This document shows positions 4,579 to 16,239 of a DNA stretch of 64,000 bases, in pieces. Position numbers and translations under genes: made by a program. Position 1 is the stretch's first letter; each line of letters begins with the position of its first letter. The stretch is from sequence record NC_027399.1. One strand, 5' to 3'. The notes under the pieces were generated by a model. The model ran no database searches and was not told the origin of the DNA. It saw only the letters and a program-made list of their open reading frames with translations.

Positions 4579-4982
4579 ATAAATCAATTAAAGATGCTCT
4601 TAATATTCTGGAACGAGAGTATTATAAAATCAAAGGTTCAATCAACCAATACAAAGTTCGAGAAGAAATTCTCAATAGAGTAGAGGAAATGAAAAACCGT
4701 TCCATTGAAAAACAAAATATCCAAAATAATACAACAAAAGAAACAGTATTGAATGCTTTTGTCAAAATTATAGAGGATACTGGATATTCAGACACAGATT
4801 ATGAAATCACAGAAAACATGACTGTACTGAATATTAAAGAAAAATTCAATCTGGATACATGGGACTGGTTTGATATCATGGTTGAAGTATCAGAACTTTT
4901 CGATGTACACTTAGATGATGAATTGTATCTGGATGATGTAGTACTGAAAGATATTATTGAAGAAATTTTGAAAGATATTTAA
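4575..4982 (+). CDS. protein with C-terminal acyl carrier protein-like domain
   Basis: NLDTWDWFDIMVEVSELFDVHLDDE aligns by eye with ACP [25 protein letters not shown]. Confidence 0.6.
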   Translation: MNKSIKDALNILEREYYKIKGSINQYKVREEILNRVEEMKNRSIEKQNIQNNTTKETVLNAFVKIIEDTGYSDTDYEITENMTVLNIKEKFNLDTWDWFDIMVEVSELFDVHLDDELYLDDVVLKDIIEEILKDI

Positions 4983-4992
4983 AAATAGACCC

Positions 4993-4998
4993 TAAATA
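4993..4998 (+). promoter_or_regulatory. T4-like late promoter TAAATA (spanin operon)
   Basis: CCTAAATA 23 nt upstream of i-spanin; same motif precedes most structural genes. Confidence 0.55.
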
Positions 4999-5020
4999 TT
5001 CATATATCTTTGAAGGAGAT

Positions 5021-5395
5021 GTGAATATGTTAGAGTTTATAATCAAGGTTGTATCCGACAATTATAAACCCATCCTGATTGTATTGGCGATGGGTTTTTG
5101 TGTTTTCGGAGGATGGAAAGCAAATACTTATTACACCGGTTATCAATTAAGTATTTCCCAAAAAATTGAGAAAAAAGTAGATGATGCTATTGATAAGCTA
5201 CAACAAGAAAGTGCAAAAAATTTAGTTGAAACACAAAAGACAATTAAAGAGAATGCAACTAAAATTGTGGAAACCAAAGTACCAGTTATTATAGAGAAAA
5301 AAGTATACCAAAATGTCTGTTTAGATGAAGATGGTCTTCAGGTACTAAAAGAATTAAAACTTAATTCAACTGAAGGAAGGAGAAAACTACAATGA
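5021..5395 (+). CDS. i-spanin (Rz-like)
   Basis: N-terminal TM helix, coiled coil, C-terminal IIEKKVYQNVCLDEDG typical of Rz; precedes a lipoprotein. Confidence 0.8.
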   Translation: MNMLEFIIKVVSDNYKPILIVLAMGFCVFGGWKANTYYTGYQLSISQKIEKKVDDAIDKLQQESAKNLVETQKTIKENATKIVETKVPVIIEKKVYQNVCLDEDGLQVLKELKLNSTEGRRKLQ

Positions 5396-5709
5396 AATTT
5401 AAATTAAAATATGTTGTACTACTGTTGGTATTATCTTTAATTGGATGCAATAGTACTGCTCCAGTTGAGATGAAACAACAAGTACAACAGGAAGTACTAT
5501 TGGAACGCTGTTCAGAAGACACTCCATTACCAACACAAAAAACTGTTGACAAAGACGGAAATGTTGGATATGATGGTAAAGAAGTCTTTAGGGTATTACG
5601 TGAATGGGATGCAATTTATTTTGATTGTGCGAGCCGTTTAGATGCACTCATTACGTATCTACAAAAAACCCAAGATCCTAATTTTAAGGTAACTATAAAG
5701 GATAAGTAA
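5392..5709 (+). CDS. o-spanin (Rz1-like lipoprotein)
   Basis: Lipobox LIGC, Pro-rich stretch, YFDCASRLDAL. Confidence 0.8.
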   Translation: MKFKLKYVVLLLVLSLIGCNSTAPVEMKQQVQQEVLLERCSEDTPLPTQKTVDKDGNVGYDGKEVFRVLREWDAIYFDCASRLDALITYLQKTQDPNFKVTIKDK

Positions 5710-6293
5710 TGAATAAGTACAAAGTACTAAAAGTATTACCTTTATCATTTCTAAATTCGTTAGATCATAATGATATCAAATCAAAAATAGGACATTGTGG
5801 TGATTCAAATTTTTTATACTATCCACAAAAAGTAAAAACATTTTCCAAGAATCACAAATGTGTAGCATGTGGTATCGAAGCCACTGAAGTACGAATTGAA
5901 TACATGCAAGAGTGTTCTCATGCAATCTATAGCAAACCACACATCAATGTATATGCGGTGCTTGGTAATTATTCAGTACTAATGACAGTTGATCACGATA
6001 TACTTGCATCCGAAGGCGGAAATGATTTAGACAATAATTTTAGTACCATGTGTTCCAAATGTAATAACAAAAGAGGATCAAAGTATAAGACACTCAAATC
6101 ATTCCTCAAATCAATTGAGGGGCGAGATCTCTTAACGGAATACATGTCTGTACCTAAAAAGACAAAAACCAGTCAGAACGTGGCTGAGCAGCGTTTACAT
6201 GATGAATTTTGGGAATTAGGACATAACTGGCATTACAGAGAATATCTTCGTTATCTGAAGGCCAAAAATAAAGCTAAAAAGAAAGGGGCATAA
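5709..6293 (+). CDS. HNH endonuclease
   Basis: CVAC...TVDHDILASEGG..DNNFSTMCSKCNNKRG. Confidence 0.8.
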   Translation: MNKYKVLKVLPLSFLNSLDHNDIKSKIGHCGDSNFLYYPQKVKTFSKNHKCVACGIEATEVRIEYMQECSHAIYSKPHINVYAVLGNYSVLMTVDHDILASEGGNDLDNNFSTMCSKCNNKRGSKYKTLKSFLKSIEGRDLLTEYMSVPKKTKTSQNVAEQRLHDEFWELGHNWHYREYLRYLKAKNKAKKKGA

Positions 6294-6310
6294 GTTGCCC
6301 CTTTACTTTT
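6283..6310 (+). terminator. intrinsic terminator
   Basis: AAGGGGCA-taagt-TGCCCCTT followed by T-rich tract. Confidence 0.75.
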
Positions 6311-6366
6311 ATCCAAATTTTGTTATAATATAAAAATCAAAATTTAATAAAAATGAGAAAAGAGTA

Positions 6367-6762
6367 ATGCTCAAAGAGTTTGATTACAGTACTTTAGAAG
6401 TTATTTCAGCAGTTAAAAATATCAACAATTTAGATGATGAAAAAACAGTACTAATAACAATCACATTTGTAAACAAAGAAGATTCATATAAACATTTATC
6501 TGGTATAGAAGAAATGTTGCATAAACTTCATTTAGAAGAAAATCGGAAATATATTAAACTACAATGTAGTTATACCCAAAATTTGAACAATTTTTTAATT
6601 ATAAATAAAACAATTAAGATTAGTTTCAATGATCCTAAACAAAAATACCGTACTAAATCGTTCAACGAAGATCAGGTTAGTAATGAATTACTAATGGATA
6701 TTGAATTTATCAATGATTTCTTCGATTCATGTGATAATGAATTAAAAAAGGTATACGTGTAA
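6367..6762 (+). CDS. hypothetical protein
   Basis: 131-aa ORF with extended -10 TGtTATAAT at 6321-6329 upstream. Confidence 0.7.
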   Translation: MLKEFDYSTLEVISAVKNINNLDDEKTVLITITFVNKEDSYKHLSGIEEMLHKLHLEENRKYIKLQCSYTQNLNNFLIINKTIKISFNDPKQKYRTKSFNEDQVSNELLMDIEFINDFFDSCDNELKKVYV

Positions 6763-6770
6763 AAATATTT

Positions 6771-6807
6771 TTGAACAATTTTAGTACTATGTAATATAAT
6801 GTAAATA
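6771..6807 (+). promoter_or_regulatory. sigma70-type promoter with adjacent late TAAATA, upstream of the non-coding region
   Basis: TTGAAC(6771-6776)-N18-TATAAT(6795-6800); TAAATA at 6802-6807. Confidence 0.6.
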
Positions 6808-7295
6808 ATATCAATTCGAGGACTGAATTCTGCTGAATATCTATATGTATATGGATATACAAATAAACTTGAACCTATCGAAAACGTAGAGAGGCATTTG
6901 AGTGGTTCAGCNNNATAAAATCCTAAGTGTGAGCTTACAAAGCACAGCCATAATTCCAAAGAGTGCACAGGAGTCATCGCAACACGGCAAGTAAAAGAGA
7001 GCTATAGACATATGCTTTCCATCACTATAATCCTCTGGTGATGATAGATTGAACCTACGGAAAGTATTTTTCATAATTGTTAAGGGAGAATACACCAAAA
7101 TTTTTACAGGAGAGTTGCGTCTAAATTTTGTTGTATTCAAGTACTGAGATTGGTCAAATAGTCTCAGTATTAAGTGTGTGGTATGATACCTACTAAACCA
7201 CATGACCTCTGCATAAGACTGAGATAGGGAGAAACCGGGCAGACCGCTTCCGTTCTTTATAAAAAAAGAAATTCTCAATTTGACAGTTTCGAAGA
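6807..7295 (+). ncRNA. candidate large structured non-coding RNA (~480 nt)
   Basis: No credible CDS, raised GC, many nested stems with G-U pairs, and a long-range closing helix 6815-6829 with 7277-7293. Confidence 0.55.
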
Positions 7296-7301
7296 CTACC
7301 A

Positions 7302-7419
7302 TCTTCAAGAAATAAAAAAACGTTTTTAAGAACGCGTTTCGTTGCGTTATTTTTTTCTTCCCTCCCTGTGGGGGGGGGATATAAAGTTTCTCTTCCAAAC
7401 CTCTTCAAGAAATAAAAAA
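7302..7419. repeat. 18-bp direct repeat TCTTCAAGAAATAAAAAA spaced 100 bp apart, flanking a C-tract/G-tract hairpin
   Basis: Copies at 7302-7319 and 7402-7419; CCCTCCC-TGT-GGGGGGG and AACGC..GCGTT stems between them. Confidence 0.8.
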
Positions 7420-7767
7420 GAAAAACAACAATTACCGATTAAAATCAAACAACACAGAACGAAACGAAGTGAAGTGAATGAGTTGTTTGATTTTATGAGA
7501 GATGTGTTGAACGAAGTGAAATACATCTTGACATGGATAAACAATAAGTACTTAATTAATAAAAACAAATAAATCAAGTACTGAAATAAATTACAAAGGA
7601 ATTATATCTAATGAATACTATAAAAAAAAGAACCAGATATAATTAAGTACCGATTGGTTCTCTTTTTAAATAACCGACTATAAATTAGTCAAATCAAATA
7701 AATTCATTTAATAAAAAGAAATAAATATTTCTATAAATCCCAACCAAAGGGCTTATAGGAGAAATTA

Positions 7768-8217
7768 ATGCAAGAACCACAAGACATAAATCAGTTACGC
7801 AATTTAATGGATTTCATAGTACAATCAGAAGAAGACGAGTCCTATGATCAATTACTGCTTACATTTATTGAAAATAGTTTATTCCTTGAATCAGCAGCAC
7901 ACAACTGGCATTTACAAAGCAAACACTACACAAAGCACTTGCAATTAGATGAGTTATACAAAGAACTACCGGAGTTCATTGATGCATTTATTGAAGGAAT
8001 TATGGAATCAAGAGGGCCATTAATAATTGGTACTGGAAATAGCTACCAATTCACTGAAATAAGTACTTGTATTCCTACTTTAGAAGAGTATCTAAATCAA
8101 TGCGAAGCAATTCACCAGATGCTTGAATCTAATGAGGACTATGGAAGTACTAACACACTTGAAGACATAATGAGTTTTATTGATGGTGTTCTTTATAAAT
8201 TAAAACATTTACAATAA
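7768..8217 (+). CDS. Dps/ferritin-like protein
   Basis: AHNWHLQ..HYTKHLQLDELY...DAFIE ferroxidase-like motif, four-helix-bundle size, AGGAG RBS. Confidence 0.7.
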   Translation: MQEPQDINQLRNLMDFIVQSEEDESYDQLLLTFIENSLFLESAAHNWHLQSKHYTKHLQLDELYKELPEFIDAFIEGIMESRGPLIIGTGNSYQFTEISTCIPTLEEYLNQCEAIHQMLESNEDYGSTNTLEDIMSFIDGVLYKLKHLQ

Positions 8218-8222
8218 TAAAT

Positions 8223-8250
8223 GGAGAGTCAAAAGACTCTCCTTTCTTTT
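8223..8250 (+). terminator. intrinsic terminator
   Basis: GGAGAGTC-aaaa-GACTCTCC + TTTCTTTT. Confidence 0.8.
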
Positions 8251-8263
8251 TGGATAAAATAAT

Positions 8264-8653
8264 ATGAAAATACGAATTCATGAACACACAACTTATAATT
8301 ATTGTGAAGATTGTGGTCTAGAATCTTCATTGATATATTCTGTATCTGGTGATGGAATCTCATTTAAACAGGGAGACCATGCATATTGTTATGGAACTGA
8401 ATCTGGTGATATAGAAAATGTTCTAAAAGAGCTATTTTTACGCTTGCAATCCAAGGGAATTGATGCTAGACTGCCGGTGATGATAGATAATGACATTGAT
8501 TCAGTACTGAATTATGATTCTTTTATCCACTCGGGATATGTTCATTATTTGAACACTTTGGGTGTAAATGTAAAACTAACATATAGTACTGAAGACTATC
8601 CAGATATGGATGGCGGTGATTATATTGATATTGAGGATGATTATGAAAGCTAA
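8264..8653 (+). CDS. hypothetical protein (CxxC...HxxC)
   Basis: 129-aa ORF. Confidence 0.7.
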   Translation: MKIRIHEHTTYNYCEDCGLESSLIYSVSGDGISFKQGDHAYCYGTESGDIENVLKELFLRLQSKGIDARLPVMIDNDIDSVLNYDSFIHSGYVHYLNTLGVNVKLTYSTEDYPDMDGGDYIDIEDDYES

Positions 8654-9203
8654 AGAACTTGCAGAATTACTAATGAAAAATCCAGAACAAGAAGTATACT
8701 TGGAAGAAACACATTTTGATGATTGGGACTGTTCTGTATTTTATACACCATCTGAAGTTGTAGATATTCAAATTACTCCAAGTGGAGTTTTTATTAAACA
8801 CAATCCGATGCATAGTCAGGATACAACTTCATTAAAGATGCCAAGTACTGAACCAGTTGTTGGTTCACTCAACGTGTTGTTAAATTGCCCAATTGGTGAT
8901 CTACGATATTTCAGTAATGATACATCCAATCACGTTCAATCATTTGTTGAAGAATTATTGAATTATGGTTCAATTAGTGATTATGTTTCATTTATGGATG
9001 CACACATTCGTTTTGTGTTACAACAAACTGATGTTGATTACAGTACAGAAGATGGTTATTTTATCGGTCCAGATGATTGCACTTATGAAGTACTAACAAG
9101 TTATGATCCAAACACTTGGGAAACTTTTTATACTGAAATGACCTACCAAGAAGTTTTTGATTATGCACACAAAAACTTTGAAATTAAGAAATACGAGGAA
9201 TAA
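8643..9203 (+). CDS. hypothetical protein
   Basis: ATG 8643 after GAGG RBS. Confidence 0.7.
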   Translation: MKAKELAELLMKNPEQEVYLEETHFDDWDCSVFYTPSEVVDIQITPSGVFIKHNPMHSQDTTSLKMPSTEPVVGSLNVLLNCPIGDLRYFSNDTSNHVQSFVEELLNYGSISDYVSFMDAHIRFVLQQTDVDYSTEDGYFIGPDDCTYEVLTSYDPNTWETFYTEMTYQEVFDYAHKNFEIKKYEE

Positions 9204-9204
9204 A

Positions 9205-9696
9205 ATGTATACTGTCATTTTTGTATCACAGCCATATAATAATGAAGATGATTATTCAAAAAGTACAGATGGTTCTATGACAATCAAGAATTCAAATTCC
9301 AAATTGGAAACAAATAAGATTATCAATGAATTGATCAATGATTATTATCATAAAGATAATAAAAACACAGCATTAAACCGTCTTGATTTTGGTGATTTTG
9401 GGCTTGTTGTATTACTGGATGGTTGTGTACTACAAGAATTTAACATGAATAATATTGATTACAGTGATTTAACATCACCAGTTAAAAGTACTGATTATTT
9501 TGACATTAAATCAATTGATAATAAAGTTTCAAAGAACATTAGTAATATTAACAAATTTGCTCATGATTTCAAACTTGAAGAAGTTAATGCCTTCAGAAAG
9601 TTGAAAACTATGTATCAGGAGATTGAAATGGAGAAACATGAACGTAGACAACTTAGTATTTTATTAGAAAAATATCCAGATATGGGTGGTAGATAA
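9205..9696 (+). CDS. hypothetical protein
   Basis: ATG 9205 after GAGG RBS. Confidence 0.7.
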   Translation: MYTVIFVSQPYNNEDDYSKSTDGSMTIKNSNSKLETNKIINELINDYYHKDNKNTALNRLDFGDFGLVVLLDGCVLQEFNMNNIDYSDLTSPVKSTDYFDIKSIDNKVSKNISNINKFAHDFKLEEVNAFRKLKTMYQEIEMEKHERRQLSILLEKYPDMGGR

Positions 9697-9795
9697 TGGC
9701 ATTGCGTTCAATAAAGAAATATAGTGCAACAACAAAAATAATCAAAAAAGATGGTTATGATTTAGTACTGAAACCTGAATATCAATATATTAAAA

Positions 9796-10023
9796 ATGCT
9801 ATCTTTGAAATGCCAATATGGTGCTAAAAGAAGAAAAATCATTCTTGATATGTTAAGAGAAGGTGTTGAATTTAAAGTTAATGGTATGCATGATATCCAA
9901 ACCAAAAATGATCCAGATATTAAACGATTGTTGAAGTACAAGAAAATAGAGATGTTTAATGTGAGAAGTGGTTCATGGTCAGATCGTAGTAAACATACAT
10001 ACTTGAGGATTAAAAATGGATGA
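9796..10023 (+). CDS. small basic hypothetical protein
   Basis: 75-aa ORF. Confidence 0.55.
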   Translation: MLSLKCQYGAKRRKIILDMLREGVEFKVNGMHDIQTKNDPDIKRLLKYKKIEMFNVRSGSWSDRSKHTYLRIKNG

Positions 10024-10186
10024 AACTGATTTAGAAATTTTATTGACAAATAATCTAAGTATAGAAATTGATACAGTAGATGATGATTACTACAATATGG
10101 ATGGTGATATTGTTAGAAGAAAACATATTACTGTTAGCATTTTATACAAAGGAAAGGTAATAAGCACAGATATTAGTACTGTATAA
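10016..10186 (+). CDS. small acidic hypothetical protein (not in ORF track)
   Basis: GAGG RBS; MDETDLEILL...STDISTV*, 56 aa, fills the gap before tk. Confidence 0.6.
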   Translation: MDETDLEILLTNNLSIEIDTVDDDYYNMDGDIVRRKHITVSILYKGKVISTDISTV

Positions 10187-10197
10187 GGAAATACAAA

Positions 10198-10773
10198 ATG
10201 AGTTTGATTTATACTTTCGCGGTGATGGCCGCAGGGAAAAGTACACAATTATTACAAAATGCATATAATCACAGTAAAAATGGATTAAAAGTACTGTATT
10301 ATACAAGTTCACTGGATAACAGATATGGTGTGGGTAAAATAACATCCAGAATTGGTATTAATGCAAATGCTGAGGTGATTCCAAAAGATGATCTTTCAGT
10401 ACTGCAAAATATCATCGAACTGTTGAAGAAAGACGACTACGTTGCTATTTTTGTTGATGAGTGTCAATTTTTGAATTCAAAACAGGTTGACTTTTTGAGT
10501 GATATCGTTGATAATTACGAAATAGACATTTATTGCTACGGCATTAAAACTGACTTTGAAGGTAAGTTGTTTGAAGGTAGCAAACGATTAATAGAAATTG
10601 CTGATTCCGTTAAAGAACTGGAAAATTTATGTGAAAATCATAAATGTAAAAACTTAGCTATTATGAATGCTCGTATAGTCGATAGTACTGAACAAGTGCT
10701 GATCGGCGGTTCTGAAGCATACAAAAGTTTATGTAGAAAGTGTTATAAAAATCATATTTCTAAAAGAGGTTAA
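10198..10773 (+). CDS. tdk: thymidine kinase
   Basis: AVMAAGKSTQLL P-loop, IFVDECQFL, YGIKTDF, zinc Cys pairs. Confidence 0.95.
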   Translation: MSLIYTFAVMAAGKSTQLLQNAYNHSKNGLKVLYYTSSLDNRYGVGKITSRIGINANAEVIPKDDLSVLQNIIELLKKDDYVAIFVDECQFLNSKQVDFLSDIVDNYEIDIYCYGIKTDFEGKLFEGSKRLIEIADSVKELENLCENHKCKNLAIMNARIVDSTEQVLIGGSEAYKSLCRKCYKNHISKRG

Positions 10774-10777
10774 TGCA

Positions 10778-11005
10778 ATGAAAATCATTAAAAATATTTT
10801 CACTCGCGTTGGGGAAGGTATTGTTGAATCTTTTTCTTTTATGTTTGGCACAGCCTGTAATTTAATTGCAGTACTGTGGTTTTCTTTGGCTTTACATTTT
10901 GTTCCAGTGTGGTTTATTGCTACAGTTATAATTGTGATTCTGTTAGTGGTAATTTATTTTACATATAAAGATGAACTCGATTCAATTAAAGAATCCGATG
11001 ATTAA
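10778..11005 (+). CDS. small membrane protein
   Basis: Two hydrophobic helices. Confidence 0.65.
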   Translation: MKIIKNIFTRVGEGIVESFSFMFGTACNLIAVLWFSLALHFVPVWFIATVIIVILLVVIYFTYKDELDSIKESDD

Positions 11006-11010
11006 TAACA

Positions 11011-11040
11011 AAAACTTCTCCTTTTGGGGAAGTTTTATTT
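11011..11040 (+). terminator. intrinsic terminator
   Basis: AAAACTTCTCC-tttt-GGGGAAGTTTT + T tract. Confidence 0.7.
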
Positions 11041-11053
11041 TTAAGGTACTAAT

Positions 11054-11518
11054 ATGTTAATTGCTTATTTTGTATTAATGCTCTTTACTTTAGTTATTGT
11101 AGTACTGGATGGCTCTTATATTGGTTTATTCGGTAAAACTATCCAGAACTATCGTATCGCAGGAGCAGTAAATGATTCAGAATCAAGACGTGTATCATAT
11201 CTATGTGCGAGAGCATTAAATCATGAAATTGATGTTAAAATAATCGAAGATAAACATGAATCTTATCTGGTATTCAAAGATGAATTAGTATGTCTTGATA
11301 TTACAGACCGATTGAGATGGACGTTCGGTAATAGAATGAAGATGAACAGTGTAACACAGGAAACTTTTATTAAAAAATGTGATAACGGAAGCAATAATTT
11401 GTCTATTAGTACCAAAAAAGATATTGAAGAAGTTATTCAGTACTGTAAAAATAATAATCTAATTGATTCTTATAAGAGTTACGTGTCAATTAGTGATGAC
11501 CATTGGTGGTTTGAATGA
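11054..11518 (+). CDS. hypothetical membrane-anchored protein
   Basis: N-terminal TM helix. Confidence 0.7.
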   Translation: MLIAYFVLMLFTLVIVVLDGSYIGLFGKTIQNYRIAGAVNDSESRRVSYLCARALNHEIDVKIIEDKHESYLVFKDELVCLDITDRLRWTFGNRMKMNSVTQETFIKKCDNGSNNLSISTKKDIEEVIQYCKNNNLIDSYKSYVSISDDHWWFE

Positions 11519-11931
11519 GAGTACGTAAACACAAATTAAAACACTATAACAAAATTATCAAAAAATATTATTTAATTGATGATGATTTTATACGTAAAAT
11601 GTATCGTTCACTACATACCAGAGTATACCCCGACTGTGTATTGAATGATAATAAAAAATACTACAATCCTGGTAAATCCAAGTACAAGAAAAAAGTAAAA
11701 AAAGAAAAATTTAAAACTAAGAATTCTTTTGAAAAATTTATTCCAATGAGTAAAATATATGCATGGATACCAATCACTTATTACAATCCAGTCAAAAGAA
11801 GTAGAGTAAAAGATATATCCAATGGTTATATAATGTGCAGCCGAGTTGACCTGAATGAAATTCTTGGTACTGAATACGATGAAATGGATTTCCAAAATAT
11901 GAATTTAATTTCATATTTTTCAGAGTGGTGA
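11515..11931 (+). CDS. basic hypothetical protein
   Basis: ATGA overlap. Confidence 0.65.
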   Translation: MRVRKHKLKHYNKIIKKYYLIDDDFIRKMYRSLHTRVYPDCVLNDNKKYYNPGKSKYKKKVKKEKFKTKNSFEKFIPMSKIYAWIPITYYNPVKRSRVKDISNGYIMCSRVDLNEILGTEYDEMDFQNMNLISYFSEW

Positions 11932-11969
11932 TTTAATTTTTTTGGATATTTTTTATTAGGTGTGATATA

Positions 11970-12311
11970 ATGTATACAAATAAAGCACAAGTTGACACAA
12001 TGTACTGGAATATTCATATTGCTGGGGATTTAGCAGCAGCGGAACGTTTTTGTACTGAATATGCATTTCAAAAAGGTTGGTGTACTCAGATTTATCCATG
12101 CAAGTACATTTATACTGGTGGTCAAGAGTCTGGTATCGTGGCTCGTATTATTTCTTATCCTCGTTTTGTGAAGAGTTTTGACATTCAGAACGATGAAGTT
12201 ATTGATTTTGCCAAGAAATTAGCAGAACGTCTTTGTCAGAAAAGTTTTACAATTGAAAATAAAGATACCAGTACTTATTACGAAAGTGATAATCCACTAC
12301 ATGGAAAATAA
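11970..12311 (+). CDS. conserved phage hypothetical protein
   Basis: IHIAGD...YIYTGGQESG..ISYPRF; true start may be ATG 12000. Confidence 0.7.
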   Translation: MYTNKAQVDTMYWNIHIAGDLAAAERFCTEYAFQKGWCTQIYPCKYIYTGGQESGIVARIISYPRFVKSFDIQNDEVIDFAKKLAERLCQKSFTIENKDTSTYYESDNPLHGK

Positions 12312-12791
12312 ATGAAAGCTAAAATTACTTATACGTATGAATTTGATCCATCAGAATCTGAGTTTTGGTCACATGAAACTGAACAAGATATGCTTAATGT
12401 ATTAACTAGTAATGCTGAAGCTGGATTTCATAGAGTTCGTTTGAATCATGAATATCAACATAAAGTTTCTGATTTTAGTTATTCTATAAAACATGCTAAA
12501 AATACTTTTGATATAATTATTGAAAGTGAGTATCCGATTCATCGTTGTGAAGAATTTCTTGAAGATTTCAGTGATGATTGTTTTGAAGATCTTATGTCAC
12601 AATTTTCTGTGTATTATTCAAAACATAACGTTGAGATTAAAAATTGGATAGAAATACCTACTAAACCAGGAAAATGTTCTCACATTTATCAACACTTGCA
12701 ATTTATGGCAGTTGGTGATAAAATACAAGAATTGAAGAAATGTGAAAAGTGTGAAGAAGTCTTTACATTTGACGTTAAAAAAGGAAAATAG
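12312..12791 (+). CDS. hypothetical protein with C-terminal Cys/His ribbon
   Basis: CSH...CEKC. Confidence 0.7.
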   Translation: MKAKITYTYEFDPSESEFWSHETEQDMLNVLTSNAEAGFHRVRLNHEYQHKVSDFSYSIKHAKNTFDIIIESEYPIHRCEEFLEDFSDDCFEDLMSQFSVYYSKHNVEIKNWIEIPTKPGKCSHIYQHLQFMAVGDKIQELKKCEKCEEVFTFDVKKGK

Positions 12792-12926
12792 ATGAAAGGA
12801 TTACGAAATTTTACATATGCTACGTACATTGCAATACGTACTAGTTACGAAATGAACCCAGTACTGACTACTGCTCTTGGAACAGTTACGGTACTTTTTG
12901 TTTTGAGTATATTTGGAGTTATTTAA
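12792..12926 (+). CDS. small membrane protein (not in ORF track)
   Basis: AAGGA RBS; 44 aa with C-terminal TM helix. Confidence 0.55.
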   Translation: MKGLRNFTYATYIAIRTSYEMNPVLTTALGTVTVLFVLSIFGVI

Positions 12927-12928
12927 TA

Positions 12929-13135
12929 ATGTCTGTGAAAATCAATGCTGATATTTACTGTAGTGGTGCACCGAACTATTTTATTTTTGCAGTAAGTACA
13001 TCTTATGATAGTAAAGGTGATTCTTATACTTTGATTAATAATACACATTGGGTACGTACAAGTAACCCCATTGATATTTCTGAATTATCAAACTATTATA
13101 GCATTGGAAAAGACAGCATTTTTGTAAACAATTGA
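12929..13135 (+). CDS. hypothetical protein
   Basis: GGAG RBS, 68 aa. Confidence 0.6.
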   Translation: MSVKINADIYCSGAPNYFIFAVSTSYDSKGDSYTLINNTHWVRTSNPIDISELSNYYSIGKDSIFVNN

Positions 13136-13145
13136 GGAATATTAC

Positions 13146-13553
13146 GTGATTTCATTGGAAGGTACATTGCAATATGATCCGCCAAGGACTATTAAAATCA
13201 ATGAACCTTATTGGTTAGTACTAAACCTACCAGATGAAATTATTAAGTACTACCAATGGTTTGTTCGTAAAGAATTATTCATTGATATTAAAGATCCTCC
13301 ACACAGTGCTCATGTGAGCATAGTTCGTGGTGAAGTTCCTCCTAATATTGATATGTGGAAAAAATATGATGGGATGGAATTACATTTCGAATATTATCCA
13401 TATATTACAATTAAAAAGGATGAGAAAAATCCAGGAAATTTTTTCTTTATTAACTTTTATTCTGATGAAATATTGAGCATTAGGGAAGAACTGGGATTAT
13501 ATTCCAAATATTCCGAGTGGCATTTTACGATTGGTAGAACACACTACGACTAA
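13146..13553 (+). CDS. 2H phosphoesterase-superfamily protein
   Basis: Two Hx(S/T) motifs, AHVSIV and WHFTIG, about 75 aa apart; GAGG RBS, GTG start. Confidence 0.7.
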   Translation: MISLEGTLQYDPPRTIKINEPYWLVLNLPDEIIKYYQWFVRKELFIDIKDPPHSAHVSIVRGEVPPNIDMWKKYDGMELHFEYYPYITIKKDEKNPGNFFFINFYSDEILSIREELGLYSKYSEWHFTIGRTHYD

Positions 13554-13652
13554 ATATAATTTGACATTAAATGAAATCAGTATTAAAATACTGAGATTGT
13601 TAAGTCCATAGTGGCTTGATGCGGAAAAGCCACTTTCTGTATCAAGCCTTTT
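13551..13652 (+). promoter_or_regulatory. endolysin promoter(s) and structured leader
   Basis: TAAATA 13551-13556; TTGACA-N17-TAAAAT 13561-13589; palindrome 13577-13594; 15-bp hairpin 13613-13648 + TTTT. Confidence 0.65.
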
Positions 13653-13680
13653 ATTAAACAAAAAAGGAGAAATACAGAAC

Positions 13681-14583
13681 ATGGCGAAACATAACAGAAA
13701 AACCATCAAAAAGCTTATTCTTTTAAGTGGTTTAACTGTTCTTGCTGCCGCTACATTTGAATTTAACGCTTTTTCTAATAACGATCACTTATCATCGCAA
13801 AAGGTAAGTATACAGGAACCGCATATTCAGCAAATTCAAAAGCAAGTACTTAACATTACAGTACTTAACAGCGAGAATGAAAAATACACGGTACAGGCTG
13901 GTGATACATATAAAAGTATTTCCGTTAAATATAAGCCAAAAAACGTGAAACTATCCGAGTATATCACATTAATAAAAAATATTAATTTGAATTCTCCTAT
14001 TAGAACTTCTCAAGTTATCCTCTTACCTAATAAAGAGGATTTGCAGAGCATTATGACTGATGAGGTTATAAAATTCGATTATACAAACCCAAATTTTATT
14101 TCTCACTTAAAAGAACAAGAGGGATCAAAAAAATATCAAAGTACTACTAAACGTAGATTGTTAAATGGTACTTATGGTTATTCTTACAAAAACTCTAAGT
14201 TCTATCCATACAGAGATAGCTATGGTAATTACACCATAGGCTTCGGTCATTATATTTCTCGTAATGAATCAGTTGCAATGAAGTACAAAAATGGCATCAG
14301 TACTAAGGAAGCACATGATTTATTACTTGAAGATCTTAAAGTTACTGATTTACAATTAACCAAATTATTACAAGAAAAGAATGTTAAAAATTTGAGTCCA
14401 TACCAAGAGAGGGTATTATTTGAAATGACATTTATGTTAGGTTCAGATAAATTGTCAAAATTCCATACAATGTGGAGTGGTATTAAAACTGGAAATCATA
14501 AAAAGGTTAAACAGGCGATTGTCAATTCATTGTGGTATCGTCAGGTACCAAATCGTGCTGAATTGCTCGTAAACAATCTTTAA
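13681..14583 (+). CDS. endolysin: N-terminal signal/SAR-like helix, LysM domain, T4-lysozyme-like (GH24) domain
   Basis: YTVQAGDTYKSI LysM; EQEG...YRDSYGNYTIGFGH; SLWYRQVPNRA. Confidence 0.85.
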   Translation: MAKHNRKTIKKLILLSGLTVLAAATFEFNAFSNNDHLSSQKVSIQEPHIQQIQKQVLNITVLNSENEKYTVQAGDTYKSISVKYKPKNVKLSEYITLIKNINLNSPIRTSQVILLPNKEDLQSIMTDEVIKFDYTNPNFISHLKEQEGSKKYQSTTKRRLLNGTYGYSYKNSKFYPYRDSYGNYTIGFGHYISRNESVAMKYKNGISTKEAHDLLLEDLKVTDLQLTKLLQEKNVKNLSPYQERVLFEMTFMLGSDKLSKFHTMWSGIKTGNHKKVKQAIVNSLWYRQVPNRAELLVNNL

Positions 14584-14598
14584 AACATTTTTTTGGCA

Positions 14599-14628
14599 TT
14601 GACAACATTACAGATTGTGTGTTATAAT
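14599..14628 (+). promoter_or_regulatory. sigma70 early promoter
   Basis: TTGACA-N18-TATAAT with extended TG. Confidence 0.75.
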
Positions 14629-14655
14629 AAAGGGACTTTAAGAGTCCCTTTTTCT
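14629..14655 (+). terminator. intrinsic terminator for endolysin
   Basis: AAAGGGACT...AGTCCCTTTTT. Confidence 0.7.
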
Positions 14656-14668
14656 ATTTGGAAAATGT

Positions 14669-15121
14669 ATGCAAGAAACAATCAAATCTATTTCATTAAA
14701 AAATGAATTACAATCTGTACTTGATATTAAAGATATTCATTACTATAGAAAAAGAGATAAAAATAATAAATTTAGTGCAGGATGGTTTAAAATAACAAAA
14801 AATACAAGTATTTGTCAGGCACGTTGTGGTGTGAATTATGCTTCGTATCTTTGTATTGAAGTACGTTATCCAAACAGAGATGAATTAAAATTTAAGTTAT
14901 ACAATGATGCAATTGTATTGGAAGTGAGAAACGGGTTTATTAATATTTTTACGTTTAAACATGTACAACATTGTAGATTTACACCTGATTTATCTTATGA
15001 TATGTACCATCAATATATGTTCATTGAAGACCATTGGAATTTATCATATGATGAGTATTCAGTACTGAACAAGATTTATAATAAATGTAAAGATCATTTA
15101 TTGAAAGAAGAAAAAAGATGA
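14669..15121 (+). CDS. hypothetical protein
   Basis: 150-aa ORF. Confidence 0.7.
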   Translation: MQETIKSISLKNELQSVLDIKDIHYYRKRDKNNKFSAGWFKITKNTSICQARCGVNYASYLCIEVRYPNRDELKFKLYNDAIVLEVRNGFINIFTFKHVQHCRFTPDLSYDMYHQYMFIEDHWNLSYDEYSVLNKIYNKCKDHLLKEEKR

Positions 15122-15132
15122 AGGGTTAAAAT

Positions 15133-16239
15133 ATGAAAAAATATCTGGTAGGTGGTTATTGTCGTGACCGTCTTATGGGGTTAAAACCAAAAGACAAAGA
15201 TTATGTTATTGTTGGTGCTAATGAATCAGATATAAAATATCTGGAAAGTGCTGGATACAAACAGGTTGGTGTTGATTTCCCTGTGTATTTGAGTCCAAAG
15301 GGTAATGAATTTGCATTAGCTCGTGTAGAAAGAAAAACAGGGAATGGTTATGGTGGTTTTACCGTTGAAACAAAAGGTGTCACTCTTGAAGAAGACTTAT
15401 CTCGTCGAGATTTGACAATTAATAGTATTGCATATGAACCACTAATGGGGATCCACATTGACCCGTTTAAAGGAAGAGATGATATTAAAAATAAAATCTT
15501 GCGTCATACAAGTTCAGCTTTTAGTGAAGATCCACTCCGTGTTCTAAGGCTTGCTCGTTTTGCTACACGTTTTCAGGATTTTACTATTCATTCTGATACT
15601 GAACAAATGGTAATTGATATGGTACAAAGTGGTGAAACTGATTACTTGGTACCTGACCGAGTTTATGTTGAATTTAAAAAAGCATTTTCAGAAGAAAAAC
15701 CAGGTCGATTTATTAAAGTATTAAATGATATTGGATATATTCCCAAAGTACTACCTAAGTTTAAATGTACTAAAAAGAACATCGAATTGATTGATTATAT
15801 TTCGATGAATTGTACTGAACAATGGAAAGATTATTTCATTTGGAGTGTATTACTACAGGATGAAATTACTAATATTGAATCTAAAATCCGTGTACCACAA
15901 AAATACATTAAATTTAGTTCTTTTGTAGACCGTATGAAGGAAAATATTAAAACGTTTCGTAAAAAATCAGTAGAGGAAATGTGTGATATTCTCTTTGATA
16001 TGAATATCAAAAATAACGGTGGTGAAGAGTTTTTATATAAAGTACTGGAGTATTTTATTCTACGAAAAGAAATTGATGTAGACTTAGAAGACTTGATTAT
16101 TAAAGTATATGACAGATATGATAGTACTGTCATTCCTGATATTCAGGAAATGGTAAAAACTGGGGAACTTGATCCAAAAGACATTCGTGATTTTGTTCAA
16201 AATACACGCTATCATGAAATTAAAAAAATGTTTATCTGA
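15133..16239 (+). CDS. cca: tRNA nucleotidyltransferase (CCA-adding enzyme, class II)
   Basis: YLVGGYCRDRL..KDKDYV, RRDLTINSIA, FSEDPLRVLRLARFA. Confidence 0.92.
   Translation: MKKYLVGGYCRDRLMGLKPKDKDYVIVGANESDIKYLESAGYKQVGVDFPVYLSPKGNEFALARVERKTGNGYGGFTVETKGVTLEEDLSRRDLTINSIAYEPLMGIHIDPFKGRDDIKNKILRHTSSAFSEDPLRVLRLARFATRFQDFTIHSDTEQMVIDMVQSGETDYLVPDRVYVEFKKAFSEEKPGRFIKVLNDIGYIPKVLPKFKCTKKNIELIDYISMNCTEQWKDYFIWSVLLQDEITNIESKIRVPQKYIKFSSFVDRMKENIKTFRKKSVEEMCDILFDMNIKNNGGEEFLYKVLEYFILRKEIDVDLEDLIIKVYDRYDSTVIPDIQEMVKTGELDPKDIRDFVQNTRYHEIKKMFI

Follow-up and report, generated by a model that had tools for sequence, protein, structure and literature searches.

A probable new family of large structured RNAs shared by Rak2-like jumbo phages and chromosomal islands of Enterobacterales

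The genome of the Klebsiella jumbo phage K64-1 (Alcyoneusvirus) contains, between gp014 (a DUF7325 protein; 6367-6762) and gp018 (a DUF5856/Dps-like protein), about 1 kb of DNA (6763-7767) without a credible gene, which raises the question of what this interval encodes. All positions given here are those of the window, that is, the whole stretch of 64,000 nucleotides that was analysed (bases 1-64000 of the phage genome; 100% identity to AB897757/NC_027399), unless an extracted stretch from another locus is named. With a GC content of 0.34-0.40, the interval stands out from its immediate flanks (0.23-0.25), a difference that an initial annotation of the bare sequence had already picked up when it postulated a single structured RNA of ~480 nt at this place. 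The database records place open reading frames (ORFs) here: RefSeq annotates gp015-gp017, three 'hypothetical proteins' of 21-76 amino acids (aa) (6929-6994, 7128-7196, and 7342-7572), the K64-1 gap holds a 163-aa open frame on the - strand, and the record of phage RaK2 carries ORF014w (217 aa) on the opposite strand over the orthologous gap.

The analysis reported here attributes the interval to a multi-copy family with units of ~0.5-0.65 kb rather than to a single ~480-nt RNA; conservation of the K64-1 copy reaches to ~7412. We are almost certain that this is a real and new family of large structured non-coding RNAs, and members of it are found in related jumbo phages as well as in small integrated elements of bacterial chromosomes.

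Comparative evidence for a folded RNA with three pseudoknots

Fifty-two distinct copies of the unit were aligned (alignment A1). Helices were listed from visible compensatory changes together with a column screen and were then counted on A1, and the counts were set against those from 500 shuffles and from helices with slid pairing partners, a control that keeps the relatedness of the copies. Across 90 pairs in 17 helices, standard pairs filled 93.2% of 4549 cells, as compared with 74.8% in the shuffled and 39-43% in the slid data. Sixty-nine of the 90 pairs had changed on both sides (shuffled, 50.4 +/- 2.3; slid, 28-33), cells with double changes numbered 830 (238 and 71-132, respectively), and the covariation score was 0.517 (0.196 and 0.08-0.11); not one of the 500 shuffles reached any of these observed values. 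Despite residual phylogenetic signal, the slid-partner control is decisive here.

Among the elements examined (labelled here by letter or, as counted on A1, by helix number; PK designates a pseudoknot), seven are 99-100% paired with three to four pair types per position, namely Pb, Pc, Pd, PK2, Pk, Pl, and PK3. PK2 crosses Pk and Pl. In PK3, the loop of hairpin Pi (7153-7159) pairs with 7278-7284; all seven pairs covary and 99.2% of the cells are paired. An all-against-all screen of columns for covariation was too noisy, yet it brought out PK3. Since the 5' leaders do not align, PK1 was examined apart from the A1 count: the longest complementarity within a copy averaged 7.6 base pairs (bp), with at least 7 bp in 81% of the copies, whereas mismatched copies gave 5.3 bp (14%). 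PK1 occurs in at least 10 sequence variants, with 9 bp in RaK2 and 8-9 bp in many variants. The pairing of GCTGAAT with GGTTCAGC that the initial annotation had drawn is therefore real, and it corresponds to PK1, in which a 5' strand pairs with the loop of Pb. When run blind on A1, RNAalifold recovered Pb, Pc, Pd, Pf, Pi, Pj, Pk, Pl, Pm, and the C/G hairpin described below, and 42 of its 62 predicted pairs were compensated. Collectively, the RNA possesses at least 17 conserved helices, including three pseudoknots, and has invariant unpaired nucleotides at its junctions. G.U and U.G cells outnumber A.C and C.A cells by 349 to 60, and because of this excess the structure is read on the + strand, as had been proposed; the elements of the unit described below lie on that strand.

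The run of NNN in the K64-1 record (6912-6914) does not represent three ambiguous bases but a gap in the record, at which RaK2 and all other Alcyoneusvirus genomes have ~26 nt (AGCACGCCTTGCAGGTAGTACCGGTG). Four helix strands are hidden by it, the 3' ones of PK1 and Pb as well as the 5' ones of Pc and Pd, and the K64-1 coordinates downstream of it are consequently shifted relative to those of the related phages. We therefore folded the RaK2 orthologue, which is complete and 96.7% identical, in place of the K64-1 copy. Its minimum free energy (MFE) of -135.4 kcal/mol was lower than that of every one of 100 shuffles (-115.0 +/- 6.2 kcal/mol; z = -3.29). Two of the checks to which the initial annotation had proposed to subject its RNA, namely covariation among homologues in related jumbo phages and folding energy against shuffled sequences, came out in its favor. 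The helix that it had taken to close the whole structure (6815-6829 with 7277-7293) is not supported: it appears in the MFE fold of RaK2, but it is not conserved, overlaps the 3' strand of PK3 (7278-7284), and carries an uncompensated G-to-T change in phage Muenster.

In its order of elements, the unit begins with the promoter and a variable leader, to which the 5' strand of PK1 (CTGCTGAAT; 6830-6838), a variable hairpin (H1), hairpin Pa, the junction GATGAG, and Pb are joined. H1 (6837-6859) is taken from the MFE fold, and a hairpin of differing sequence is present at the same place in other copies. Pa (6869-6897; helix 1) has the conserved loop GAAAAYGTA and shows double changes in seven of its eight pairs. 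The loop of Pb constitutes the 3' strand of PK1 (6905-6911 plus bases in the NNN gap), and the 5' strand and loop of Pb (6902-6914) are interrupted by the NNN. The long-range helices Pc and Pd follow around a variable hairpin; their 5' partners fall in the NNN gap, while their 3' strands are located at 6987-6991 (Pc) and 6976-6979 (Pd), and they form helices 3 and 4, which are 100% and 99.5% paired. Next in line are ATAAAG, Pf (missing from the K64-1 window copy), GATAGACATA, Pg, the nearly invariant, single-stranded TAAGGGAG (7081-7088), Ph, Pi, and Pj. In K64-1, the motif ATAGACATAT is followed by an Alcyoneusvirus-type Pg (7003-7067), in which ATGCTTTCC (7012-7020) pairs with GGAAAGTAT (7059-7067) around an inserted hairpin (7021-7046). 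The Pg hairpin of the family is supported by covariation (helix 7), but the Alcyoneusvirus version barely varies among copies; the stem with an inner hairpin noticed earlier at 7012/7059 is this enlarged Pg specific to the genus, and its pairing is plausible.

Domain Ph (7088-7138; helix 8) has closing pairs that are 97.8% paired, with double changes in three of three, and bears a swappable module of ~30 nt (TTTGTACAATATAGATCCGTCCAAAATTTG), which resides in Ph in most copies and within Pm in those whose Ph is devoid of it. Pi (7140-7171; helices 9 and 10) is a long hairpin whose loop GTCAAAT (7153-7159) is the 5' strand of PK3, and it is followed by hairpin Pj (7175-7204; helix 11). These three elements account for the stems previously seen at 7088/7138, 7140/7171, and 7176/7203, each of which is borne out by compensatory changes. 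The remainder of the body consists of GACC and the 3' core (7208-7284), in which PK2 (7208-7212 with 7239-7243), Pk (7220-7224 with 7273-7277), Pl (7227-7231 with 7247-7251), and Pm (7254-7269) are combined with GATAGGGAGAAAC and CCGCTTCC and are followed by the 3' strand of PK3 (ATTTGAC; 7278-7284). Helices 10 and 12-15 of this core are 97-100% paired and show double changes in 22 of 25 pairs. Beyond it lie Pn and a sequence that we call box 1, an optional terminator, the C/G hairpin, and box 2. Two individual copies deserve mention: the copy next to the Dam gene of phage UE-S1 carries a 54-nt tandem duplication in the Pc/Pd region (AGAAGAAACCCGTCAGATGTGGGCATAGTTTGAACCCCTCACGGCAATGCGGCTC; ~1060-1115 of the extracted stretch), and the authors of that record placed a repeat_region on the first ~160 nt of another copy (1534-1691 of the extracted stretch).

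A scan for promoters found the sigma-70-type promoter TTGAAC-N18-TATAAT (6771-6800) that the initial annotation had recognized. Its -10 box is the best-conserved 5' feature of the family, with T7, A8, T9, A10, and T12 invariant in the 52 copies; most of the other copies have the extended form TGnTATAAT, and the 121Q paralogues additionally have a GGGACA or GAGACA -35 region in common. The adjacent TAAATA, previously read as a late promoter, is conserved in no other copy. From the position of the -10 box we infer that the RNA starts about 7 nt past it. On the - strand, opposite the 5' end, where an antisense regulator of the ColE1 RNA I kind would have its promoter, there are weak promoter-like sites at 6805-6778 and 6814-6786, but the scan returned 7 sites in the region as compared with a chance expectation of 9.2. 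The copies next to Dam genes have a GC-rich hairpin and a run of seven T immediately past the -10 box, at the expected RNA start (1434-1465, 935-970, and 1440-1469 of the extracted stretches); the annotation of phage Munch assigns this hairpin to the upstream gene as its terminator.

The body of the structured RNA extends over 6807-7313, as judged from the profile match, the covariation, and the excess of G.U pairs, with its end placed at box 1. The family profile matches the K64-1 copy over 6790-7411 (E = 7e-87), and all elements map onto it except for Pf and those hidden by the NNN. Beyond the body, the conserved unit takes in an intrinsic terminator (7331-7357), the only terminator-like site found in 6300-8000, and a conserved hairpin of a C-run and a G-run (7358-7378; paired 7361-7366 with 7370-7375), and it ends with box 2. 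About half of the family copies have a terminator past the body. The C/G hairpin (helix 17) is 96.7% paired, is unique in sequence within the window, and keeps many U.G pairs, which argues for a constraint at the RNA level, even though it is located past the terminator. The segment 7291-7313 holds the terminal hairpin Pn (GAAGA/TCTTC; helix 16), which is only 75% paired across the family, and box 1 (CTTCAAGAAAT), which is directly repeated as box 2 (7397-7419), the 3' limit of the conserved unit. An exact 17-nt direct repeat (CTTCAAGAAATAAAAAA; 7303-7319 and 7403-7419) brackets the terminator and the C/G hairpin; its two occurrences in 64 kb compare with 0.18 expected. The box sequence is CTTCAAG(AAAT) in K64-1 and CGTCAG or CGTCAA in other phages, and the two boxes of a copy are nearly always of the same variant, even where the copies of one genome differ. 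No covarying partner segment for the boxes was found within the RNA, including the Pa/Pb junction and the 5' CUGAU, and RNAalifold paired just the invariant UGA/UCA.

Farther downstream, an A-tract/hairpin/T-tract with a GAACGAA..GTGA loop (7441-7496) turned up as a chance match to a microRNA (miRNA) model. The segment 7441-7560 holds two hairpins with loops of this type (AAAATCAAACAAC with GTTGTTTGATTTT, and AGATGT with ACATCT immediately 5' of TTGACA), and comparable hairpins trail the unit in EJP2, Munch, BF, and 121Q. They may serve to end read-through transcripts or to regulate the next promoter.

The RNA does not belong to a described class as far as our searches reach. Rfam 15 gave no match in the window at the gathering score, and relaxed thresholds brought no meaningful match either, be it in 6600-7800 (E<=10) or in nine other copies (E<=5); the models searched included GOLLD, ROOL, group I/II introns, RNase P, tmRNA, 6S, OLE, HEARO, and raiA. 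Permissive matches (a miRNA, XIST, and models of small RNAs) were chance only and lay in the flanks. ARAGORN detected neither a tRNA nor a tmRNA gene in the window. RNase P RNA was rejected in view of the missing Rfam match at E<=10 and because no conserved RNase P regions were recognized, and a group I/II intron in view of the missing Rfam match, the RNA's own promoter, and its setting between complete, unrelated genes; neither a group II domain V nor a group I P7/G-binding signature was recognized. The initial views that the RNA is none of these and that it possibly belongs to an undescribed family hold, and our literature search found no description of it. For PA5oct, a distant relative, non-coding RNAs were defined by RNA-seq (PMC7318152); its ncRNA001 and ncRNA002 do not match the family profile and are not homologous. 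The csRNAs treated in another study average 67 nt, and the Rak2-like phages with the RNA described here go unmentioned there (PMC10690425).

Copies in jumbo phages and in chromosomal islands

Used as a query, the K64-1 copy retrieved Alcyoneusvirus genomes alone (92-100% identity), together with an 82-nt core match in the Escherichia coli phage EJP2. The corresponding non-coding gap of EJP2, in turn, matched 71 records at 4-5 places per record, which between them span all Rak2-like genera: Asteriusvirus (121Q, PBECO4), Munch-like phages, Eneladusvirus (BF, fHe-Yen9-04, Erwinia phages), Mimasvirus (GAP32, CBB, XbC2), and Hallingskeid and Kaldavass. Exact-word scans of IMG/VR likewise found several separate loci per genome, and with the 121Q paralogue search described below the number came to 3-5 loci; a looser DNA pattern yielded mostly chance matches among the matches listed. 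K64-1 has 2 copies, 121Q has 4, and BF-like phages have 5, so that the range in related jumbo phages is 2-5.

Profile searches found one copy within the window. It is the positional orthologue of a 121Q copy located downstream of genes for a spanin, an HNH endonuclease, and a DUF7325 protein, and the corresponding K64-1 neighbors, gp012 (HNH endonuclease; 5709-6293) and gp014, are kept beside it. Copies elsewhere have unrelated neighbors; the functional link to HNH that had been floated for the K64-1 locus is therefore not consistent across the family and is abandoned. The second, diverged K64-1 copy was found with a 121Q paralogue as query at ~279.4-280.1 kb, outside the window, between gp574 and gp579 (2194-2707 of the extracted stretch), and it is followed by genes for a Dam methyltransferase and a nucleotidyltransferase, the same position as that of copies in EJP2, BF, and CBB. 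RefSeq places four tiny ORFs (gp575-578) over it. A further locus, next to EndoVII, is occupied in 121Q, CBB, and GAP32 and empty in K64-1, in which the EndoVII-baseplate intergenic region (77.7-78.6 kb; 2137-2500 of the extracted stretch) comprises just ~360 nt with a bidirectional terminator. At this empty site, neither an RNA remnant nor a box or scar was found; the flanks are too diverged from those of 121Q to define ends. Flanking genes differ from locus to locus (downstream, a Dps-like protein, a 175-203 aa protein and then Dam, and others), and the downstream genes carry their own promoters. This variation of neighbors indicates a stand-alone gene rather than a leader. In a tree built from conserved columns, the copies of K64-1 and of 121Q group by genome, and those of BF, GAP32, CBB, and Yen9-04 by locus. 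Judged from the tree, the grouping by genome would fit either co-evolution with a genome-encoded partner or gene conversion.

Bacterial genomes were scanned with one conserved-core pattern and one genome per species. Eight of the 32 loci that emerged are full-length family members (E = 1e-86 to 1e-94); they are from Serratia fonticola GTA-SR07 (a complete chromosome), Serratia sp. 2723, Enterobacter chinensis, Silvania hatchlandensis, Enterobacteriaceae RIT714, metagenome-assembled genomes of a Buttiauxella and of an Enterobacteriaceae, and a 2.8-kb contig labelled Clostridium, which is probably mis-binned. A scan of metagenomes added dozens of further copies, both jumbo-phage-like and island-like. 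The chromosomal copies are located in small integrated elements (5-15 kb) of Enterobacterales. Three types of integrase occur in these islands, namely a large serine recombinase (~560 aa) that combines Resolvase, Recombinase, and Zn-ribbon domains, a tyrosine integrase of ~423 aa, and a protein of ~700 aa, and in most islands the integrase is encoded directly upstream of the RNA. Other island genes encode a CI-like repressor (HTH plus Peptidase_S24), which is convergent with the RNA, a Ner-like HTH_35 protein, a 286-aa membrane protein, an LprI-family protein, and a small resolvase. Both the cargo and the integration site vary, with insertions seen at a truncated pilin gene, in the rof/tilS region, and downstream of ffs.

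The element of S. fonticola seemingly contains little beyond the RNA, proteins of 293 and 299 aa, and a serine recombinase. Two nearly identical 87-aa genes, which we take to be Rof-like, with a presumably TilS-like neighbor gene, are present beside it (4775-5490 of the extracted stretch); the pair looks like a target duplication caused by the integration of a very small island. Among 5426 complete E. coli genomes, 2 contain the RNA; the island that carries it lies downstream of ffs and encodes a tyrosine integrase. In strain LR-29-1 (island at 4753-15303 of the extracted stretch), this integrase is split by IS3, the RNA occupies a 1.4-kb unannotated gap, the cargo genes encode DUF4326, DUF488, and dual-OB proteins, and a small recombinase is present too. 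The plasmids searched contained no match to the RNA, no capsid or transfer genes were found among the island ORFs scanned, and none of the 9 island proteins scanned is a replication protein. When island proteins were compared with the flanks of the phage copies, the sole matches were spurious antisense ORFs inside the RNA; with no island protein having a homologue beside the phage copies, the RNA alone is shared. In the tree, the island copies form a clade of their own, joined by a 15.7-kb IMG/VR contig, and the copy from the E. coli island is nested in a clade of phage paralogues, which indicates that exchange between phage and island took place more than once.

Weighing what the RNA may do

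A conserved tertiary structure, invariant unpaired junctions, and module swapping are combined in ribozymes and in the cores of ribonucleoproteins (RNPs). Hence, we favor, with moderate confidence, that the RNA works in trans as a folded RNA or RNP. The peripheral module shifts its position between copies, as modules do in large ribozymes, and by analogy such features seem unlike those of DNA sites or simple regulators. In the mechanism that we envisage, the RNA would be transcribed by the host RNA polymerase early in infection and would fold into a compact tertiary structure, with its 3' end either at box 1/the terminator or, after read-through past the C/G hairpin, at box 2. The folded RNA might then serve in a phage process as a subunit of an RNP with a phage-encoded partner or as a ribozyme. 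Upon infection, the islands' own copy could tap into this process by mimicking a phage component, be it for satellite hijacking or for interference. That the island copies reflect such a satellite-type or interference relationship we regard as possible rather than probable. A more specific proposal would make the RNA the means through which minimal satellites of a new kind exploit or block jumbo phages: the phage would need it as an RNP, ribozyme, or origin RNA for replication or packaging, and the islands would mimic it so that the infecting phage replicates or packages them, or to titrate its partner. This is more tentative still, and we judge it rather doubtful.

Several observations weigh against this picture. 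Our literature search found no transcript data for these phages, and we identified neither a partner protein nor a substrate nor a catalytic signature. The box 1/2 repeats, the G-run, and the multi-copy layout would fit a cis-acting DNA or RNA replicator equally well. Gene conversion by itself can explain the clustering of paralogues within a genome, and the islands, judged by their gene content, are putative satellites. Moreover, the covariation controls leave some phylogenetic signal, and the K64-1 record, short of ~26 structural nucleotides, does not permit its own copy to be folded completely.

The main rival is an origin or primer RNA, which would act in cis as a replicator of the ColE1 RNA II or T4 oriF/oriG type, with a structured transcript made by host RNA polymerase whose G-run region would form a persistent R-loop downstream that primes DNA synthesis. 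Extended to the whole family, the copies would represent several origins per 350-kb genome, and the islands would carry one for replication and headful packaging on infection; according to Kreuzer and Alberts, plasmids with T4 origins are reportedly replicated and packaged upon T4 infection. The multiple, dispersed copies, the strong sigma-70 promoter, the invariant G-run/C-run element with AT-rich sequence right downstream, and the repeat boxes as candidate protein sites all suit such a role, as do the RNA unit being the only thing common to phage and island and the missing replication protein among the 9 island proteins scanned. However, three pseudoknots and invariant junctions go beyond the needs of known primer RNAs, and half of the copies have a strong terminator between the RNA body and the G-run. 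In an integrated island, a constitutive promoter would also activate the origin in uninfected cells. No change in GC-skew was seen at the locus either, which is weak evidence for phages. We therefore consider an origin unlikely, and the explanations that follow less likely still. A self-processing ribozyme whose core cleaves or ligates at the boxes, and in this way sets the 3' end, frees an RNA with the C/G hairpin, or mobilizes the unit, would account for the size, the pseudoknots, the invariant unpaired nucleotides, and the module swapping that are typical of large ribozymes, for the identical variant of both boxes in a copy, and for loci that vary in presence or absence. We nevertheless find it quite improbable: no ribozyme or intron model matches, nothing in the RNA covaries with the boxes, the empty EndoVII site of K64-1 lacks a box or scar, and there are no flanking exons, the neighboring genes being complete.

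Still less credit is due to a homo-oligomer of the ROOL/GOLLD kind, in which PK1 and PK3 would be contacts between molecules. ROOL and GOLLD are reported to build RNA-only cages (bioRxiv 10.1101/2024.12.08.627333), and the phage association, the large size, and the loop-to-strand pairings of 7-9 bp with a distinct sequence 'code' for each paralogue would be in keeping with such an assembly; yet the RNA has no homology to ROOL or GOLLD, has no tRNA genes nearby, and the data do not separate inter- from intramolecular pairing. That the RNA is a cis-regulatory leader, similar to a riboswitch or attenuator and acting on the downstream gene through the terminator at box 1, appears hardly credible. 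It would make use of the terminator past the body and of alternative pairings that are possible around the boxes, but the downstream genes are unrelated and have promoters of their own, and the RNA of the islands and the cI-like gene run toward each other. A leader was rejected for the varied neighbors, these promoters, and the strong terminator that ends about half of the copies. Finally, a protein gene, intact or decayed, or a pure DNA repeat without any RNA is effectively excluded. The annotated ORFs of RaK2 and K64-1 and the 163-aa frame on the - strand speak for coding, but no reading frame is conserved across copies. The antisense open stretch in Alcyoneusvirus shifts in frame and length (213, 164, 116, 187, and 216 aa) even at ~95% identity, and it is absent elsewhere, the longest stop-free stretch in the other copies having a median of 75 aa in inconsistent frames. 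A short peptide past the G-run was rejected too, as its frame varies among copies and its ATG is absent in K64-1 and in one 121Q copy. The compensatory changes and the ratio of G.U to A.C cells, by contrast, indicate a + strand RNA. ORF014w of RaK2 and gp015-gp017 of K64-1, which overlap the RNA, its terminator, or its 3' elements, are thus probably annotation artefacts and not genes, a reading that we extend to many small ORFs in Hallingskeid, Muenster, fHe-Yen9-04, and the SD-series Salmonella phages.

Relation to known systems and significance

The likeness to GOLLD and ROOL that had been suggested at the outset stands as a loose analogy between large, ornate phage RNAs, and not as homology, given the missing Rfam match at E<=10. 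These RNAs, too, measure several hundred nucleotides, have many conserved helices and pseudoknots, and are stand-alone, phage-borne genes with no known function. The new RNA differs from them in sequence and structure, in its occurrence in jumbo phages of Enterobacterales instead of Lactobacillales or the rumen, in its several copies per genome, and in its presence in integrative islands; the comparison is drawn from sequence. Frequent adjacency to tRNA genes, a trait of ROOL and GOLLD, is not shared, for there is no tRNA gene in the window and the flanks of the other copies are protein genes. With ColE1 RNA II and T4 oriF/oriG, the RNA has in common a structured transcript (of ~550 nt), a host-type promoter, and a G-rich element near the 3' end, and T4 has several origins; this resemblance, read from the sequence, is confined to the promoter, the G-run, and the multi-copy layout. 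The conserved tertiary structure of the new RNA is far more elaborate, and half of its copies have an intrinsic terminator ahead of the G-run. The pRNA of phi29 is likewise a phage-encoded structured RNA with covarying loop-loop pairings and is the RNP part of a phage machine, but it comprises 174 nt, is single-copy in small Bacillus phages, and has no homology to the new RNA. Group I/II introns and RNase P RNA resemble it in size, in the pseudoknotted core, in the invariant junctions, and in peripheral modules that change position; the new RNA has no match to their models and no exons or splice-site context. Similar to phage satellites such as P4, PICI, and PICMI, the islands are small, integrase-bearing, and without transfer genes, reside in phage hosts, and share one element with a phage. 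What satellites are known to have in common with their helper is cos/pac sites or proteins, and not a large structured RNA. The islands transduced by jumbo phages in Pseudomonas belong to a different family and are located beside tmRNA (PMC12595487).

What is new is hence the family, its architecture with three pseudoknots, and its distribution over jumbo phages and islands, while large structured phage RNAs have precedents as a category. The comparative support is unusually clean, with three pseudoknots and 69 covarying pairs. To our knowledge, large and highly structured non-coding RNAs are rare, and studies of such classes (RNase P, group I/II introns, tmRNA, OLE, ROOL/GOLLD) have in nearly every case revealed a ribozyme, the core of an RNP, or an architecture that had not been expected. 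Its occurrence in culturable jumbo phages of E. coli, Klebsiella, Serratia, and Erwinia makes the RNA immediately accessible to genetic tests. For the databases, the finding entails a correction of RaK2 ORF014w, K64-1 gp015-gp017, and the many related 'hypothetical proteins' that overlap the RNA. That virulent jumbo phages (2-5 copies) and small integrative islands of their hosts alike carry the RNA ties it to the biology of phage satellites or of phage defense, and it offers a concrete way into the question of how such phages and mobile islands might interact. If such an interaction is real, the RNA would constitute an RNA-based interface between helper and satellite without precedent, in which some of the islands would bring in little beyond an integrase and the RNA itself.

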